From positions 13,144,001 through 13,208,000 of the forward strand of contig NC_088854.1 in assembly GCF_963853765.1 (NCBI RefSeq): a stretch of DNA of 64,000 nucleotides, given 5' to 3'. Position 1 is the first letter of the stretch. The number at the start of each line of letters is the position of its first letter. The DNA is from Magallana gigas (Eukaryota). The position numbers and the translations under genes were made by a program. Under the pieces are notes generated by a model, which made no database searches, was not told the origin of the DNA, and saw only the letters and a list, made by a program, of their open reading frames with translations. Shown here piece by piece: positions 21,156 to 58,787 of the stretch.

Positions 21156-22532
21156 TTAGGTTCCGATCCTCTCGGACCGTTTCGGAAAGGCATGGCAACG
21201 GTTTTGTTTCCAGAAAGCGGGCTTTATGCAGTATATGATCAGACAAATCATGAGGATAATAAGAGCTATGCCCACTACCACTGCCACAGTGATGTAAATG
21301 GACATCCCTCCCATAGGCTTGGACGTTGTCTGGTTTTCTGCTGGGGCTGTTGTCTGTGTGGCAGTCATGGTTGTTGTCGGGGTGATGGGGGTAGTGGTAG
21401 TTGGAATATCGGTTACGGTCACTTGAATGTTCACCACATTTTGTTTCTTCACATTGTTAGCCTGGACTGTCCACTGACCGTCGTCATCAACGTCCAATGA
21501 CTTTATGGTTAGGACACCTGTCTCAGATACCTCGTAATTTGGATTGTCATAATTATAGTACTTCAACTCCGTCCCATCAGGCTTTGTCCAAATGACGTCA
21601 GGGAATGGGTCTCCTCCAAATGTACATGAAATATTGAGGCTGGAGTGATACTTGCCGGTACTTGAAGTTGAAGAACAACTTACAGATGCCGGTACACAGG
21701 TTAGCTGGGAGGATGGGACATTTACAATGGACATGTATTGGAGAGATTTTGGTGTACTACACGTAACAGATTCCGGTATAGGACTAAGAAGCACGTTTAC
21801 CCACTCCAAGGCACAAGTGCATTTCCAATCGTTGTCATTTAAGTGGATACTCTTTATGTGTGGTAATGTCATTATTGATGAATTGGAAAGTTCTGTAAAT
21901 AGGTTTCCAGCTATATCAATATAAGCCATATTTGTAAGGGTCTTCGTGAAGCTCCAGTCCAACCGTTTAAGTTTGTTTCCATGAAGGTCTAAGACCTTCA
22001 ATATTGGAAGATGGTCTAATAAGCGTTTGTCCAGTTTCTTTAAGCTCATCTCTGCCAGATATAATTCTGTCAATCTTCCTAAATCGTTGAAAGCAGACAA
22101 TTGTAATTCAGTACCATTATTTCCAGATAAATTCAGAACTCTGAGTCTTGTTAACCCCTTTAACGTGTTTTGTGCTATTTCGCCAATTTTGTTGAAAGAA
22201 AAATCCAGTGTAATCAATGTTGTTGGCAAAGAACCGCTTGTTATGGATTCTACATTGCTGAAAGCCATATAAAGTCTCTCCAGTTTCTGGAAGGAATTAA
22301 GATTTTTACTTTCAATCAACGGAATCTGGTTTCGAGAGGAAAAGGTGCCACTGAGTTGTAATGAAGTGAAATGACTTGGGAATGCTGACGGAAAGTTGGT
22401 TAATCCTGGTCTGCAAATAGCAGAATCATTGGAACATTGGCACTTTGTTGGACAAGAAGATTCAACATCTCCAAAACTCACAACAATAAGTACATATGAA
22501 ATCACTGTTATGGGGCTTTTACTTCCCTGCAT
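21156..22532 (-). CDS. LIG1: single-exon LRR-Ig-mucin stalk-TM receptor (458 aa, short stalk)
   Basis: ATG at 22532 (MQGSK...). CPTKCQC LRRNT, 7-8 LRRs, WKCTCALEW...CSTP LRRCT, Ig-like domain (C..GDPFPDVIW...LTI..DDGQW), Thr-rich stalk and hydrophobic TM. Confidence 0.9.
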   Translation of the reverse strand: MQGSKSPITVISYVLIVVSFGDVESSCPTKCQCSNDSAICRPGLTNFPSAFPSHFTSLQLSGTFSSRNQIPLIESKNLNSFQKLERLYMAFSNVESITSGSLPTTLITLDFSFNKIGEIAQNTLKGLTRLRVLNLSGNNGTELQLSAFNDLGRLTELYLAEMSLKKLDKRLLDHLPILKVLDLHGNKLKRLDWSFTKTLTNMAYIDIAGNLFTELSNSSIMTLPHIKSIHLNDNDWKCTCALEWVNVLLSPIPESVTCSTPKSLQYMSIVNVPSSQLTCVPASVSCSSTSSTGKYHSSLNISCTFGGDPFPDVIWTKPDGTELKYYNYDNPNYEVSETGVLTIKSLDVDDDGQWTVQANNVKKQNVVNIQVTVTDIPTTTTPITPTTTMTATQTTAPAENQTTSKPMGGMSIYITVAVVVGIALIILMICLIIYCIKPAFWKQNRCHAFPKRSERIGT

Positions 22533-22637
22533 TGTATGATTATTCAAAGGCGTCTGAAATTTTCCTTTAGATTTGGTCAACTGTCCTGGATAGCGATGTT
22601 TACCTGTGCCTTTCACCTGCTATTGCGGCTTCAATGA

Positions 22638-55149: not shown

Positions 55150-57182
55150 CATGATCTATTCCGATTGGTGCCTACACACTTTCATGAAGGATATCTAACC
55201 AATCTTGGCATTGCTTATGCGTTCATCTATTAAAACAATAACATGTTTTCAGAAAATGATCGCTGTCTGCGTGTTACTTAACAAATAAAGAGTTCCCTTT
55301 GATTAATAGTAAATGGAGAGTTATAAATATTCATAAAAACGAGAAAAAGTTAATAAGAGGGCCCATAGGTCAGTAAGCAAATGCGAGACTGACCGTGGGT
55401 TTCCGACGATGCGATTCCAGTAGGTTTAAATACATGTCATTGAAAAATAGTGACGATCCATATTTCTCAGGTCTTTCAAAAGATTTTTCCAGAATTGAAG
55501 CGAAGTTAGTGTTGTTACATGTTCTTGTTTGTCAGTCGCGCCCGGAAATTGAATCCACGACTTCGCACATTAAACGTTTGCTAGGTTTCCTTAAACTTTG
55601 CGCGAACACTTAGATATGTTTTGCAGGTTTCTGAAATCTATCTTAAAATTTTTAAAGTTGAGTCCAAAATATTTTTTTTTAAATCTAAAATGTTTTCTTC
55701 ACTCTAATGAAAGGATTTGATGAGTTAATTCCTAAATTATAAACCAAAGACTCATATATCAATCTTTTAACCCCACGTATTGACTTAAACTATTATAATC
55801 AGCGGTGTTACACTCCATGTCGTTAATTAAAGTGCAAATAATGTGAAATCAGAATCAATTTCAAATCCGTCTTTTTCAAGTCTCCAGATAGTGCGGAATC
55901 TCTGCGCCGTGCGTGTATTTTTTGGGGGTATAGGGTGGCATGCTATTATAAATAAGCTGTAGCATGTGTTTCCTTCGACGATCTGTCAGAGAGAAAAAAA
56001 TGAAAATTCCGCCAGTTATCGGTGCGTTCACACTTTCTTTGCCATTTTTACGTCGTGGGTTTGAAGTTGCACAATGATGGCGCCGTGTCTTCTCTGTTGA
56101 CACCAGGATACGAGATAAAGACCCACAGTTCTCTTCTTTAAGTCTTGAAAAAAAAAGAATTACGCATTTTCTAATATTAGACAAATCGCTCTTACTGTAT
56201 AAACTTAAGTTTTGATGATTTGCAATAGATTTACTCATTCTTATCAAATAGACACTCTCTTTTTCGGCTCGAATCAGTCTTGGTTTTAATTATTTGTTTA
56301 TTTTGTTAATTGAATAAAAATGTTTTTTAAAAATTTTATTCAAGTACGTCAACGGACTTGATACAAGTTATATCTTATATCAAAATAGGGATCAGGTACA
56401 TGTATTTGTTCTCCTAGTATTCATTTCTTGAAAAGAGGTAAGCAATTTTGATAATTTGTGCATTTATTAGAAAATATCCACATCAACAATAAAAGAAAAC
56501 AAAGAAAACAAAGTATTTTTTGCATCAAATCAATGCACGTAATATGTGGGATTTTTTTTCGCGCACACAATAAAACAAGGATTGACATATTTGATTGAAA
56601 CAAAGAATCTCAGAAATCAAGCTGATAATATCAATGAGAACCCCTGATTTGGACAATGAATAAAATAATCTACATGTAAATTACGACAATGAAATAGAAT
56701 CACACATAATTAAAAAATTTGAATGAACAAACAGCAAAATCTAGTTTCAATAACCATAAAATAATATTTCAAAAGTAAATAAAAACACATATAAGGAACA
56801 AGAATACACTTGTAATTGAATAGCTACACCTATCCTGAATTTAGGATAAACTACCTATATTTGTAACTTTTCAGCAGTGAGGAATCTTTGGTAGAACCAT
56901 GCTATGATAGGTAATGTATCACGTCTTAAATGAAACAGTGAATGTCTATGTTTCTACGCTTGGACTTCTAACAATGATAAATGTGCTATCGACTAGCAAG
57001 TACACTTGTATATTGAGCAAATCTTTAACAATAATAAAATACATGAACAATGTAATTCCACGTAATAAACACCGTCTGACACATAAATAAACCTTGTCGT
57101 GAGTACACTACCCGGAACGTTTTTCCTGCCACATAAAGCGAGTTGTTTTGTGTTTCTATAAATTCGTAGTCTTTTCCCCAAC

Positions 57183-58787
57183 TCAGAATTCGGATAGTGT
57201 TTCAATAATGGTGAAAGCGTTTGTGTTTCGTTCCGCTTTTCGGAAGTCGTAACTTGGTTTTCTCCCCACTCTGTTCTTCTTGACTGGCCCCGAGTAAGGC
57301 TGCCCCGGCGGTTTTTTACAAAACGCAAAGTACATGATAGCAATACAGATCGAGGTAATAAGCAGCGAACTGCCTCCGACTATGGTCAAAATAACGCCGA
57401 TCTTTTCCAGATCGTCTTTAGGTTTGGACGGTGTTTTAGACGCGTTGTTGGTAGTCGTACTTTTTGTTGGAGTTGTGGTTGTGGTGGTTTTTATTGTTTT
57501 TGTTGTGGTCGGTTGTGGTGTCGTGGTCGTAGTGGTGGTGGTCGTAGGAGTTGTTGTAGGAGTTGTCGTAGTGGTCGTGGAAGCGGTCGTAGTGGTGGTA
57601 GTCGGAGTGGTAGTGGTTGTCGTGCTAGTGGTCGTTGTGGTTGTGGTGGTAGTGGTGATGATTCTTACCTCGATATGAACCACCACTTTGATATCATTTC
57701 CGTGTGTGTTCGTGACCGTCAGAGTCCAGTCGCCGGAATCACTCTCGACAGACGATGGAATCAACAGACTTCCGTCCGTGAGCACGATGTGGGAGGAATT
57801 CGTCGAGTTCTTTACTAAAAGTTCTTCACCGCTCGGTTTGTTCCATATAGGATAGGGCCGTGGATCTCCGCCGTTGAATCGACAGTTTACGCGTATTGGT
57901 TCCGTTTCATTCACGATGATCGAAGTCCTTTCGCATGTTGCGTTGTACGGTGGGATACACAGCATTTCGCTGTCTGGGATGAGCATAAGGTTTCTATTTT
58001 CCAGCTTTTTCGGCGAATCACAAATAACAACCCCTTTAATGTTTGTCCATTTCTTTAATGCATTCATTTCACAATTACAATGCCACGCATTTCCGTCTGT
58101 GTACAGGCTTTTCAGAGTGACCATTTGCTGATACGTAAAGGAGGGAAGAGCTATCAACCGGTTTCCCACCAAATCAAGGCTCATCAACGATGCAAAATTC
58201 TCGAAAACTTCGGGTTCGAATTCGACCAGTTCGTTTCCATGTAAATCTAAATGTACAATCTTCCTTGTATTGTAAAATAAATATGGCTGAAGATTACTTA
58301 ACTTCATTTGCCCAAGAAATAGTTCGAATAGATTTGGAACATGTTGAAAGGCATTTTCCTCAATCACGCAATTCTCATTGCTTGTTAGTTCGAGTTTCGT
58401 CAATTTCGTCAATCCTCGGAATGTAGCCTCTTTTACTGAGCTAAGCTGGTTGTCAGACAGATCAAGTGTTCGTAAATTAGAGAGGCTTTCAAAAGCACCG
58501 TCCTCGATTGATTCGATTCCAGAATTGGCTAGATACAGGCGCTGTAATATCGGAAAATTTGCAAAGTCACTCTTCCTTATCCTTGTGAAAGAATTTTTCT
58601 GTGCAGATGTTCCGGAGAAATAAAGGTTTTTCACGGTAGAGGGAATTCCCGAGGGTATGGCTGACAGCCCACCGAAACATTGTACAAGCGAGTCCCCAAA
58701 CAAACACCGACAGTCAGACGGGCAGCCAGCAGAAATCTCAAATAACACAACACAGCCACAAAAAATGGCAACAATTCCCCGCTCCAT
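57183..58787 (-). CDS. LIG5: divergent LRR-Ig-mucin-TM receptor (534 aa)
   Basis: ATG at 58787 (MERGIVAIF...). CPSDCRC LRRNT, the same number of LRRs and the same atypical repeats as LIG1-4, WHCNC LRRCT, Ig, Thr stalk and TM. Confidence 0.92.
   Translation of the reverse strand: MERGIVAIFCGCVVLFEISAGCPSDCRCLFGDSLVQCFGGLSAIPSGIPSTVKNLYFSGTSAQKNSFTRIRKSDFANFPILQRLYLANSGIESIEDGAFESLSNLRTLDLSDNQLSSVKEATFRGLTKLTKLELTSNENCVIEENAFQHVPNLFELFLGQMKLSNLQPYLFYNTRKIVHLDLHGNELVEFEPEVFENFASLMSLDLVGNRLIALPSFTYQQMVTLKSLYTDGNAWHCNCEMNALKKWTNIKGVVICDSPKKLENRNLMLIPDSEMLCIPPYNATCERTSIIVNETEPIRVNCRFNGGDPRPYPIWNKPSGEELLVKNSTNSSHIVLTDGSLLIPSSVESDSGDWTLTVTNTHGNDIKVVVHIEVRIITTTTTTTTTTSTTTTTTPTTTTTTASTTTTTTPTTTPTTTTTTTTTPQPTTTKTIKTTTTTTPTKSTTTNNASKTPSKPKDDLEKIGVILTIVGGSSLLITSICIAIMYFAFCKKPPGQPYSGPVKKNRVGRKPSYDFRKAERNTNAFTIIETLSEF

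Follow-up and report, generated by a model that had tools for sequence, protein, structure and literature searches.

The question raised by this locus is whether its tandem LRR-Ig receptor genes form a diversifying recognition array, as an earlier note on this DNA had claimed, or a conserved receptor family accompanied by duplicates. In the window, a stretch of 64,000 nucleotides from Magallana (Crassostrea) gigas, ORF calling and Pfam analysis confirmed the five single-exon receptor ORFs of that note, all on the minus strand: c1 (21156-22532, 458 aa), c2 (30259-31776, 505 aa), c3 (38138-39820 as listed), c4 (49385-51025, 546 aa) and c5 (57183-58787, 534 aa). Comparison of c1-c5 revealed several common features: (i) a block of seven LRRs between LRRNT and LRRCT is followed by a single Ig domain, a Thr/Pro stalk, a TM segment and a short tail, with Pfam matches to LRR_8/LRR_4 and I-set/Ig_3 in five of the five ORFs, (ii) the Thr/Pro-rich stretch of each protein comprises 38-102 residues with 54-78% T+P+S, and (iii) a single hydrophobic segment of 21 residues is followed by a tail of 22-49 residues. 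The division into four close paralogs and one divergent gene was also borne out, pairwise identity being 80-93% among c1-c4 and 31-37% between c5 and c1-c4. The exception is c3, which is broken by a transposon, so that four of the five ORFs match the earlier description. ORFs between the genes and inside the transposon proved to be non-coding or retroelement debris.

Our preferred reading, to which we give a probability of roughly 0.6, is that an ancient and conserved pair of LIG adhesion receptors, the type I membrane glycoproteins c5 and c4, lies beside three Magallana-lineage duplicates of c4, namely c3, c2 and c1. The locus has the look of an ordinary adhesion-type receptor family whose duplicates are decaying rather than of a fast-diversifying immune array. 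Gene conversion, tail loss by frameshift and a recent knockout by a foldback transposon have together shaped this tandem family, which makes it a clean natural example, and c5 and c4 are identified as the conserved, testable genes among the five.

The locus belongs to the LRR-Ig (LIG) receptor class as a lineage-specific member. The hallmarks of that class, namely a signal peptide, an LRR block with caps, one or more Ig domains and a single TM segment, were all found. The AlphaFold model (mean pLDDT 84.7) has eight concave strands and an Ig sandwich. Its top fold matches in the PDB, obtained with Foldseek, are the synaptic adhesion proteins NGL-1/-2/-3, SALM2/5, LINGO-1 and AMIGO-1, and the top matches among Swiss-Prot models are LRRC4C, LRFN1-5, LRRC4B and LRRC24. 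These matches favor an adhesion or neural role, which the earlier note had offered as an alternative to immunity. That note had also placed a protocadherin next to the cluster, and a cadherin ORF with seven repeats was indeed found at 2957-5710 (Pfam).

Each of these families was then compared with the oyster proteins. NGL-1/2/3 (LRRC4C/LRRC4/LRRC4B) share the type I LRRNT-LRR-LRRCT-Ig-TM layout and gave the top Foldseek matches (3zyj with E=6e-19, 3zyo, 3zyi and Q9HCJ2), and the c5 tail end resembles their PDZ ligand (S-x-hydrophobic). However, the NGL proteins have nine LRRs instead of seven and only 20-23% identity to the oyster proteins, which, unlike NGL, carry a Thr/Pro stalk some 100 residues long after the Ig domain; neither nine LRRs nor an ETQI-type C-terminal PDZ ligand, as in NGL/LRRC4, was found. 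Netrin-G is known only from vertebrates. One ortholog bears the NCBI name 'LRRC4-like'. The SALM/LRFN proteins give the best superposition of the LRR-Ig head (TM 0.65 for 5xwu and 0.65-0.68 for LRFN1-5) and have a similar LRR count, but they contain an FN3 domain between Ig and TM, where the oyster proteins have a mucin-like stalk; Pfam detected no FN3 domain in c1-c5 at E<=0.01. AMIGO, LRRC24 and LINGO share the combination of LRRs, one Ig domain and TM, with 2xot and Q50LG9 among the fold matches, this likeness being one of fold and domains, with a family-specific stalk and tail in the oyster. The coding regions of the vertebrate AMIGO, LRRC24 and LINGO genes are single-exon, as in the oyster genes. 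Oyster and snail relatives carry the NCBI name 'LRRC24-like'. In the proposed mechanism, the LRR-Ig head would bind a conserved and probably endogenous ligand in cell-cell or cell-matrix contact, and would be held off the membrane by the Thr/Pro stalk acting as a rod of about 100 residues, for which O-glycosylation is suggested by composition.

Judging by cross-species comparison, c5 and c4 are the only ancestral members of the cluster. The adjacent same-strand pair c5+c4 is also present in C. virginica (contig L013) and Saccostrea (contig L015), and the orthologs keep order and orientation, with near-identical tails, across the three oyster genera. The c5 orthologs (C. virginica L013, 2856-4463; Saccostrea P0074) have nearly unchanged tails, and the exact c5 protein is present in NCBI and in a cluster of 473 members; c5 is the old paralog. 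Its tail ends in ...TIIETLSEF, which fits the class I PDZ-ligand pattern as a motif. The S-E-F end occurs only in c5, whereas c4-type tails terminate in Y-E or Y-D and have no PDZ motif. The intact long form is c4, with the conserved tail ...KQDLFDTVRNLTPRRTRRVHNIGSYEHYE; by position and by regulatory DNA it is the ortholog of LOC111125415 in C. virginica and of the long form in Saccostrea.

A conserved non-coding block lies upstream of c4 (51194-51691, minus strand) and shares 83% identity over 505 nt with the DNA that precedes the long form in C. virginica, as against a coding Ks of about 1.4 in the same comparison. This block is likely a promoter or enhancer. Upstream conservation with C. 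virginica is restricted to c4 and c5, and the block is absent from c1-c3. The segment that c1-c3 share upstream was considered as a dispersed repeat and rejected, since it is found at these three genes only. Transcription of c4 as unspliced RNA is evident from RNA-library contigs, which tile 49174-51176 without joints and between silent flanks. Signaling would proceed through the family-specific tail in c4 and, as its motif suggests, through the PDZ-type C-terminus in c5. A profile of the c4-type tail searched against 1.84 billion representative proteins linked it to no signaling module and matched only its own two queries (P0010 and P0011) and a c2 fragment. A language-model search with the stalk, TM and tail was uninformative: its mucin, syndecan and neurexin-like leads all scored low (<=0.83).

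According to the preferred reading, c4 was duplicated to give c3, c2 and c1, which left the ancestral promoter block behind, and each duplicate has suffered a loss: c3 of its continuity, by a transposon in the signal peptide, c2 of its tail, by a frameshift, and c1 of the tail together with most of the stalk. As listed, c3 lacks an ATG and its signal peptide is incomplete; the first 15 codons lie 7.4 kb away with the promoter, on the far side of the transposon. The c3 body (codons 16-543 and the stop) occupies 38138-39732 on the minus strand, and homology to c4 stops at 39732. The orphan 5' end is at 47158-47203 on the same strand, where the ATG is at 47203 and the 15 leading codons read MVNKRKITAISCVLI; it adjoins a c2-like upstream region at 47204-47398, and together they are 92.6% identical to the c2 5' end (31731-31971). 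In silico removal of the insertion restores an intact c3 ORF of 543 aa. No coverage by RNA contigs or reads was observed over 47150-48749, and c3 is presumably non-functional on this haplotype.

The insertion that interrupts the signal-peptide codons of c3 is a foldback-like transposon of 7,425 bp (39733-47157). It has perfect terminal inverted repeats of 23 bp, carries inverted arrays of an 86-bp satellite, about 2 kb each (39746-41729 and 44982-47117), and is flanked by a 9-bp target duplication, CAATAAGTA, at 39724-39732 and 47158-47166. FB elements likewise make a 9-bp target duplication. No transposase match was found among its ORFs of at least 80 aa, and the element is non-autonomous. 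In the whole genome, the terminal repeat occurs 187 times, often in +/- pairs, and a control pattern 0 times, which corresponds to some 90 copies for the family. Subrepeat-built terminal inverted repeats, target duplication and multiple copies are foldback-like features, and long subrepeat-built inverted repeats, a lack of coding capacity and high copy number are shared with FB/Tetris-type foldback transposons (PMC4079207). No named satellite of C. gigas was assigned to the 86-bp unit.

The ectodomain of c2 is intact, and DNA alignment revealed one extra base in a run of Lys codons right after the TM segment (about 30315-30325) that shifts the frame; the old frame is still readable as ...DRFDTVRSLIPRKTRRMHNIGSYEH. 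In c1, the stalk is reduced to 38 residues, the TM segment is divergent, and the tail is out of the ancestral frame via indels. The short tails of both genes are remnants of the long tail, frameshifted directly behind the TM segment. The earlier suggestion that stalk and tail vary independently holds as far as stalk length and tail do differ among copies, but the tail variation is loss by frameshift and one copy has been knocked out by the transposon. The c2 tail occurs in the ancestral frame in P0090 (contig L014), which we did not count as a segregating intact allele because a second homopolymer indel makes this contig itself suspect.

Two forces act on the ectodomains. First, three incompatible site patterns among the paralogs (18, 8 and 13 sites) fall into 8 runs versus 25.7 expected (p<=1e-5), and such blocks indicate that the ectodomains are being homogenized; gene conversion holds the duplicate ectodomains close to that of c4. 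Second, c4 and c5 are under strong purifying selection, with a between-species omega against C. virginica of 0.11 (c4 versus Cv_long) and 0.04 (c5). In the tree, paralogs group by species. M. gigas carries four c4-type copies and C. virginica two or more, including an inverted one.

In the preferred reading, c2 and c1 would be either decaying or non-signaling forms. In a rival proposal, which we regard as possible but unlikely, the tail-less copies, short-stalked ones included (c1, c2, Cv_short and perhaps p6), would be functional, share the ligand-binding head and, unable to signal themselves, modulate the signaling parent as a paired/decoy receptor system, with the heads kept alike by gene conversion. 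Purifying selection on the ectodomain of c1 on its own terminal branch (20 synonymous versus 15 non-synonymous changes, with p=7e-6 in a test of neutrality and omega about 0.21) agrees with this proposal and is a poor fit to a long-dead pseudogene, and the frameshifted tails recur in independent C. gigas assemblies (c1 in P0001, c2 in P0002). C. virginica also has a tail-less, short-stalk copy with a frameshifted tail, Cv_short, the head of which is homogenized (ectodomain Ks 0.23 versus 3' Ks 1.24). However, gene conversion by itself can imitate purifying selection in a pseudogene, c2 does not depart significantly from neutrality (10 synonymous versus 18 non-synonymous changes on its terminal branch, omega about 0.5, p=0.07), the conserved promoter block is missing from the duplicates, protein branches are longer for the tail-less copies, and c1 is scarce in RNA-like runs, where 0.16-0.21 of its words are found versus 0.58-0.68 in large runs that are unclassified and probably DNA. 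An ancient split into long and short forms, with c1 orthologous to Cv_short, was rejected: their 3' ends are only 45% identical and each is nearest to the long form of its own species, leaving this orthology unsupported. That short-stalk tail-less copies arise repeatedly and independently in Magallana and C. virginica, with heads matched by conversion to the signaling parent, we consider doubtful. If true, it would represent an invertebrate counterpart of paired/decoy receptors made via frameshift rather than exon swapping, and functional tail-less copies would offer a simple system for the origin of decoy receptors.

Less probable still is an innate immune pattern-recognition array, in which the copies would broaden or tune microbe recognition by birth and death under diversifying selection. 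The tandem expansion with copy gain and loss and the variation of stalk and tail among copies are in line with it, and the turnover of copy number between lineages is the part of the earlier birth-and-death proposal that stood. In published accounts citing Wang et al. 2017 and 2019, the C. gigas LRR-Ig proteins CgLRRIG-1 to -3 are described as pattern-recognition receptors that bind PAMPs and promote phagocytosis (PMC6994640, PMC7734252), and CgLRRIG-1 is reported to be a hemocyte TM protein (PMC11999971, PMC6994640); in species and LRR+Ig domain class these proteins agree with the genes of the locus. Diversification of the binding surface, however, was not supported: omega is well under 1 throughout (0.16-0.30 for the paralog ectodomains), and the concave LRR face is conserved among paralogs, 5 of 40 concave positions being variable versus 22 of 142 others (p=0.80), so that by both tests an excess of non-synonymous change on the ligand-binding face is absent. 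Moreover, the ectodomains are homogenized and not diversified, only one of the four young copies is free of lesions, and the tails yielded no TIR, death or ITAM/ITIM module. Strong purifying selection between species, as observed here, is among the grounds that the earlier note had named for giving up its proposal.

The analogy to lamprey VLRs and GPIb-alpha captures the LRRNT/LRRCT-capped LRR solenoid on a Thr/Pro-rich, mucin-like stalk, but both lack an Ig domain, whereas c1-c5 each have one, which separates LRRCT from the stalk, an arrangement that departs from GPIb-alpha, where the LRR domain passes directly into an anionic region and the mucin stalk. VLRs, with an LRR-only ectodomain, are somatically assembled from flanking cassettes and GPI-linked. 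The oyster genes, unlike VLRs, are whole in the germline and each encodes a TM segment; self-comparison of the window revealed no extra LRR cassette copies. The account of a VLR-like diversifying array is corrected as unsupported.

It is highly improbable that the copies are haplotigs or mis-joined duplicates with long-read errors as frameshifts and insertion: both frameshifts lie in or near A-rich runs and L014 has the ancestral c2 frame, but that contig is suspect, the c1 and c2 tails recur in P0001 and P0002, the copies are 6-9% apart with distinct flanks, runs from other studies and samples contain 0.58-0.80 of the c1 and c4 words, and the insertion, one of a family with many copies, shows terminal repeats and a clean target duplication. 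The window contains no N, which together with the distinct flanks of each copy excludes the haplotype collapse that the earlier note had itself raised. The public gene models at the locus are chimeric, the 'peroxidasin' model P0003 being a fusion of c2 and c1.

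Comparison of the five minus-strand ORFs c1-c5 revealed a shared architecture: (i) LRR_8/LRR_4 and I-set/Ig_3 Pfam domains are present in every ORF, (ii) the Ig domain is followed by a stretch of 38-102 residues consisting of 54-78% Thr+Pro+Ser, and (iii) a single strongly hydrophobic segment of 21 residues precedes a tail of 22-49 residues. Counted from ATG, c1 (21156-22532) encodes 458 aa, c2 (30259-31776) 505 aa, c4 (49385-51025) 546 aa, and c5 (57183-58787) 534 aa; c3 (38138-39820) is an ORF without ATG. The earlier note described five LRR-Ig-stalk-TM ORFs; ORF, Pfam, and composition data bear this out for c1, c2, c4, and c5, and not for c3, which is a broken gene. 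The division made in the note into four close paralogs and one divergent copy agrees with the pairwise identities, which are 80-93% among c1-c4 and 31-37% between c5 and these copies, and the neighboring protocadherin it named is a protocadherin-like gene consisting of a single minus-strand ORF at 2957-5710 (917 aa from an upstream TTG; seven cadherin repeats, TM, and cytoplasmic tail), approximately 15 kb from c1. The window, chromosome DNA of Magallana (Crassostrea) gigas at G000:C2:13144001-13208000, contains no N runs, and the copies are 6-9% different and have distinct flanks.

In C. virginica, the c5 ortholog is followed by a long c4-type form on the same strand (P0004/LOC111125415, tail ...QDLFDTVRNLTPRRARRVHNIASFENYD) and then, in inverted orientation, by a 477-aa short form, the tail of which is also frameshifted. 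In Saccostrea cucullata, a long form lies 7.7 kb downstream of the c5 ortholog and has this same tail. The C-terminus ...TIIETLSEF is common to c5 and its C. virginica ortholog, a block of 505 nt located upstream of c4 (51194-51691) has 83% identity to the upstream region of the C. virginica long form, and the upstream DNA of c5 is also conserved. Judged by this conservation of order, tails, and upstream DNA, c5 and c4 constitute the conserved unit. The c1, c2, and c3 ORFs have in common a different upstream segment of approximately 200 nt, found nowhere else in the genome; c3, c2, and c1 are thus lineage-specific duplicates without the ancestral promoter block. A sixth, older member, p6, is located on the same chromosome 41 Mb away (G000:C2:54007836-54009002, minus strand; 1300-2730 of stretch L005). 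It encodes 476 aa with 65% identity to c4, a short stalk, and a tail of its own. It is perhaps the family member recovered most widely, its close relatives P0007 and P0006 representing public-sequence clusters with 534 and 146 entries, respectively. Relatives in other molluscs, such as Gigantopelta, are at approximately 33% identity.

Selection was estimated by the Nei-Gojobori method on ectodomain codons 25-375. The resulting Ka/Ks ratios (omega), which were derived from few sequences by simple pairwise or parsimony counting and can be distorted by gene conversion, are 0.16-0.30 among c1-c4 (Ks 0.15-0.27, Ka 0.03-0.05), 0.11 between c4 and the C. virginica long form (Ks 1.38, Ka 0.156), and 0.04 between c5 and its C. 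virginica ortholog (Ks 2.36, Ka 0.106). The TM segments and tails of c4 and c5 are conserved between species at the protein level (Ka 0.03-0.10). Counts of synonymous/non-synonymous changes on the own branch of each copy are 20/15 for c1 (p against neutrality 7e-6), 10/18 for c2 (p=0.07), 4/6 for c3 (p=0.16), and 13/8 for c4 (p=9e-5). With the concave face defined as positions 2, 3, 5, 7, and 8 of each LRR (40 positions total), 5/40 concave positions vary among c1-c4 vs 22/142 other positions of the LRR block (Fisher p=0.80). Thus, the site-wise and omega checks (omega <=0.30; concave p=0.80) show no sign of the diversifying binding surface that the earlier note had proposed.

An AlphaFold model of the c4 ectodomain (mean pLDDT 84.7, pTM 0.79) has its best PDB matches in NGL-1 (3zyj), NGL-3 (3zyo), NGL-2 (3zyi), SALM2/5 (5xwu, 5xnp; TM up to 0.65), LINGO-1 (2id5), and AMIGO-1 (2xot), and its best Swiss-Prot model matches in LRRC4C, LRFN1-5, LRRC4B/4, and LRRC24; the PDB sequence search agrees with the fold matches. 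Identity to these structural matches is approximately 20-24%, NGLs have nine LRRs whereas the c1-c5 family has seven, and SALMs contain an FN3 domain that is absent here. We therefore place the family in the LIG class (LRR+Ig transmembrane proteins) as a molluscan branch that belongs to no single vertebrate family. The c4-type tail was found nowhere outside the c1-c5 family. The c5 tail ends in S-E-F/L in three genera, and this C-terminus, which fits the class I PDZ-ligand pattern, is by its motif a putative PDZ ligand.

We favor, with a probability of about 0.6, a conserved pair of cell-surface adhesion or recognition receptors, in which c4 and c5 would each display an LRR-Ig head on a mucin-like rod and the head would bind a putative conserved partner. 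The recurrent tail-less copies could possibly act as decoys, a role favored by the constraint on c1 along its own branch. The reading of the locus as immune pattern-recognition receptors is weakened, as the selection pattern counts against it and its support comes from reports of oyster LRR-Ig proteins as immune PRRs (PMC6994640, PMC7734252, PMC11999971) that concern other or unidentified proteins of this type.

The tail-less state of c1 and c2 was traced by DNA alignment of the 3' ends. In c2, one extra base is present in a run of Lys codons immediately behind the TM segment, and the ancestral frame still reads ...DRFDTVRSLIPRKTRRMHNIGSYEH; in c1, homologous DNA is shifted in frame by indels and ends at an early stop. 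Both tails are thus frameshift products. The same tails recur in independent C. gigas records (P0002 for c2, P0001 for c1), so assembly error is unlikely. In the public contig L014 (P0090), the c2 tail reads in the ancestral frame; this contig carries a second homopolymer indel and is therefore only a tentative lead. At their 3' ends, c1 and the short form of C. virginica are not each other's nearest sequences, and on this ground the tail-less forms of the two species look independently derived.

In the ectodomain tree, one clade unites c1-c4 (support 96/95) and a second unites the two C. virginica copies (97/100). Within c1-c4, each of the three incompatible two-by-two site patterns occurs frequently (18, 8, and 13 sites), and these sites lie in contiguous blocks (8 runs vs 25.7 expected, p<=1e-5 by permutation). 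In both species the 3' parts are far more diverged than the ectodomains: 3' Ks is 0.7-1.5 for c1 and c2 vs c3 and c4 in C. gigas, and 1.24, vs an ectodomain Ks of 0.23, for the C. virginica copies. Because of the blocky incompatible sites, the species clades, and the diverged 3' parts, we read the head region as homogenized by gene conversion, with stalk, TM segment, and tail drifting after the frame of the tail has been lost.

The c3 gene is interrupted at codon 15/16 of its signal peptide. Homology to c4 ends at 39732, followed by an 86-bp satellite array (39746-41729) that reappears in opposite orientation at 44982-47117; directly past the second array, 47158-47398 has 92.6% identity to c2 across its start and the DNA upstream of it. 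The insertion (39733-47157; 7,425 bp) has perfect 23-bp inverted repeats at its ends, GGCAATCGGTTTTTAGAACGCAG, and is flanked on both sides by the 9-bp direct duplication CAATAAGTA; its ORFs were examined and none was of note. It is a non-autonomous, foldback-like DNA transposon. Removed in silico, it leaves an intact c3 ORF of 543 aa, and the insertion is therefore recent. The terminal repeat has 187 matches in the genome (0 for the reversed pattern used as control), often as +/- pairs 0.5-12 kb apart; many such pairs across chromosomes suggest that the family has been active recently and offers a route by which satellite DNA may spread. Also within the transposon are a second tandem array at 43880-44885 (177-bp unit, 5.7 copies, 85% matches) and a short 31-bp repeat at 41911-42051. 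The orphan c3 promoter side (47150-48749) has no RNA contig or read coverage.

The fraction of c4 words recovered is 0.70-0.91 in seven runs recorded as RNA. Contigs from two RNA libraries tile 49174-51176 exactly, with uncovered flanks and no joints, and first mates of raw stranded reads map to the plus strand, as expected for minus-strand RNA; c4 is thus transcribed as an unspliced message of approximately 2 kb. The corresponding fraction for c1 is only 0.16-0.21 in the best RNA-like runs, which words shared with its paralogs could account for, and 0.58-0.68 in large unclassified runs, which are probably DNA. The c5 protein belongs to a 473-strong cluster of public contigs. Between c4 and c5 lies an inverted pair of short repeats (52423-52575 and 54673-54825, 89% identical). 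Coverage of the first arm is high in all four RNA runs, and its reads continue into dissimilar sequence, the pattern that a dispersed expressed repeat or a MITE would give.

A collection of 15 billion proteins has no exact match to the c4 protein. The NCBI C. gigas record P0003 ('peroxidasin') is a chimera that joins parts of two of the ORFs, and every one of its residues agrees with the window. In the public models P0003 (496 aa) and P0001 (722 aa), parts of c2 and c1 are merged into a single protein; annotation of the locus needs manual correction. Long Gly/Arg-rich antisense ORFs opposite the Thr-codon stalk (49394-49996 and 38168-38740, plus strand) are a by-product of ACN repeats and not genes. 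Three successive minus-strand ORFs of 110-164 aa between c1 and c2 (24970-26312), one with a weak zf-RVT match under the Pfam cut-off (E=1.8e-5), are probably retroelement debris.
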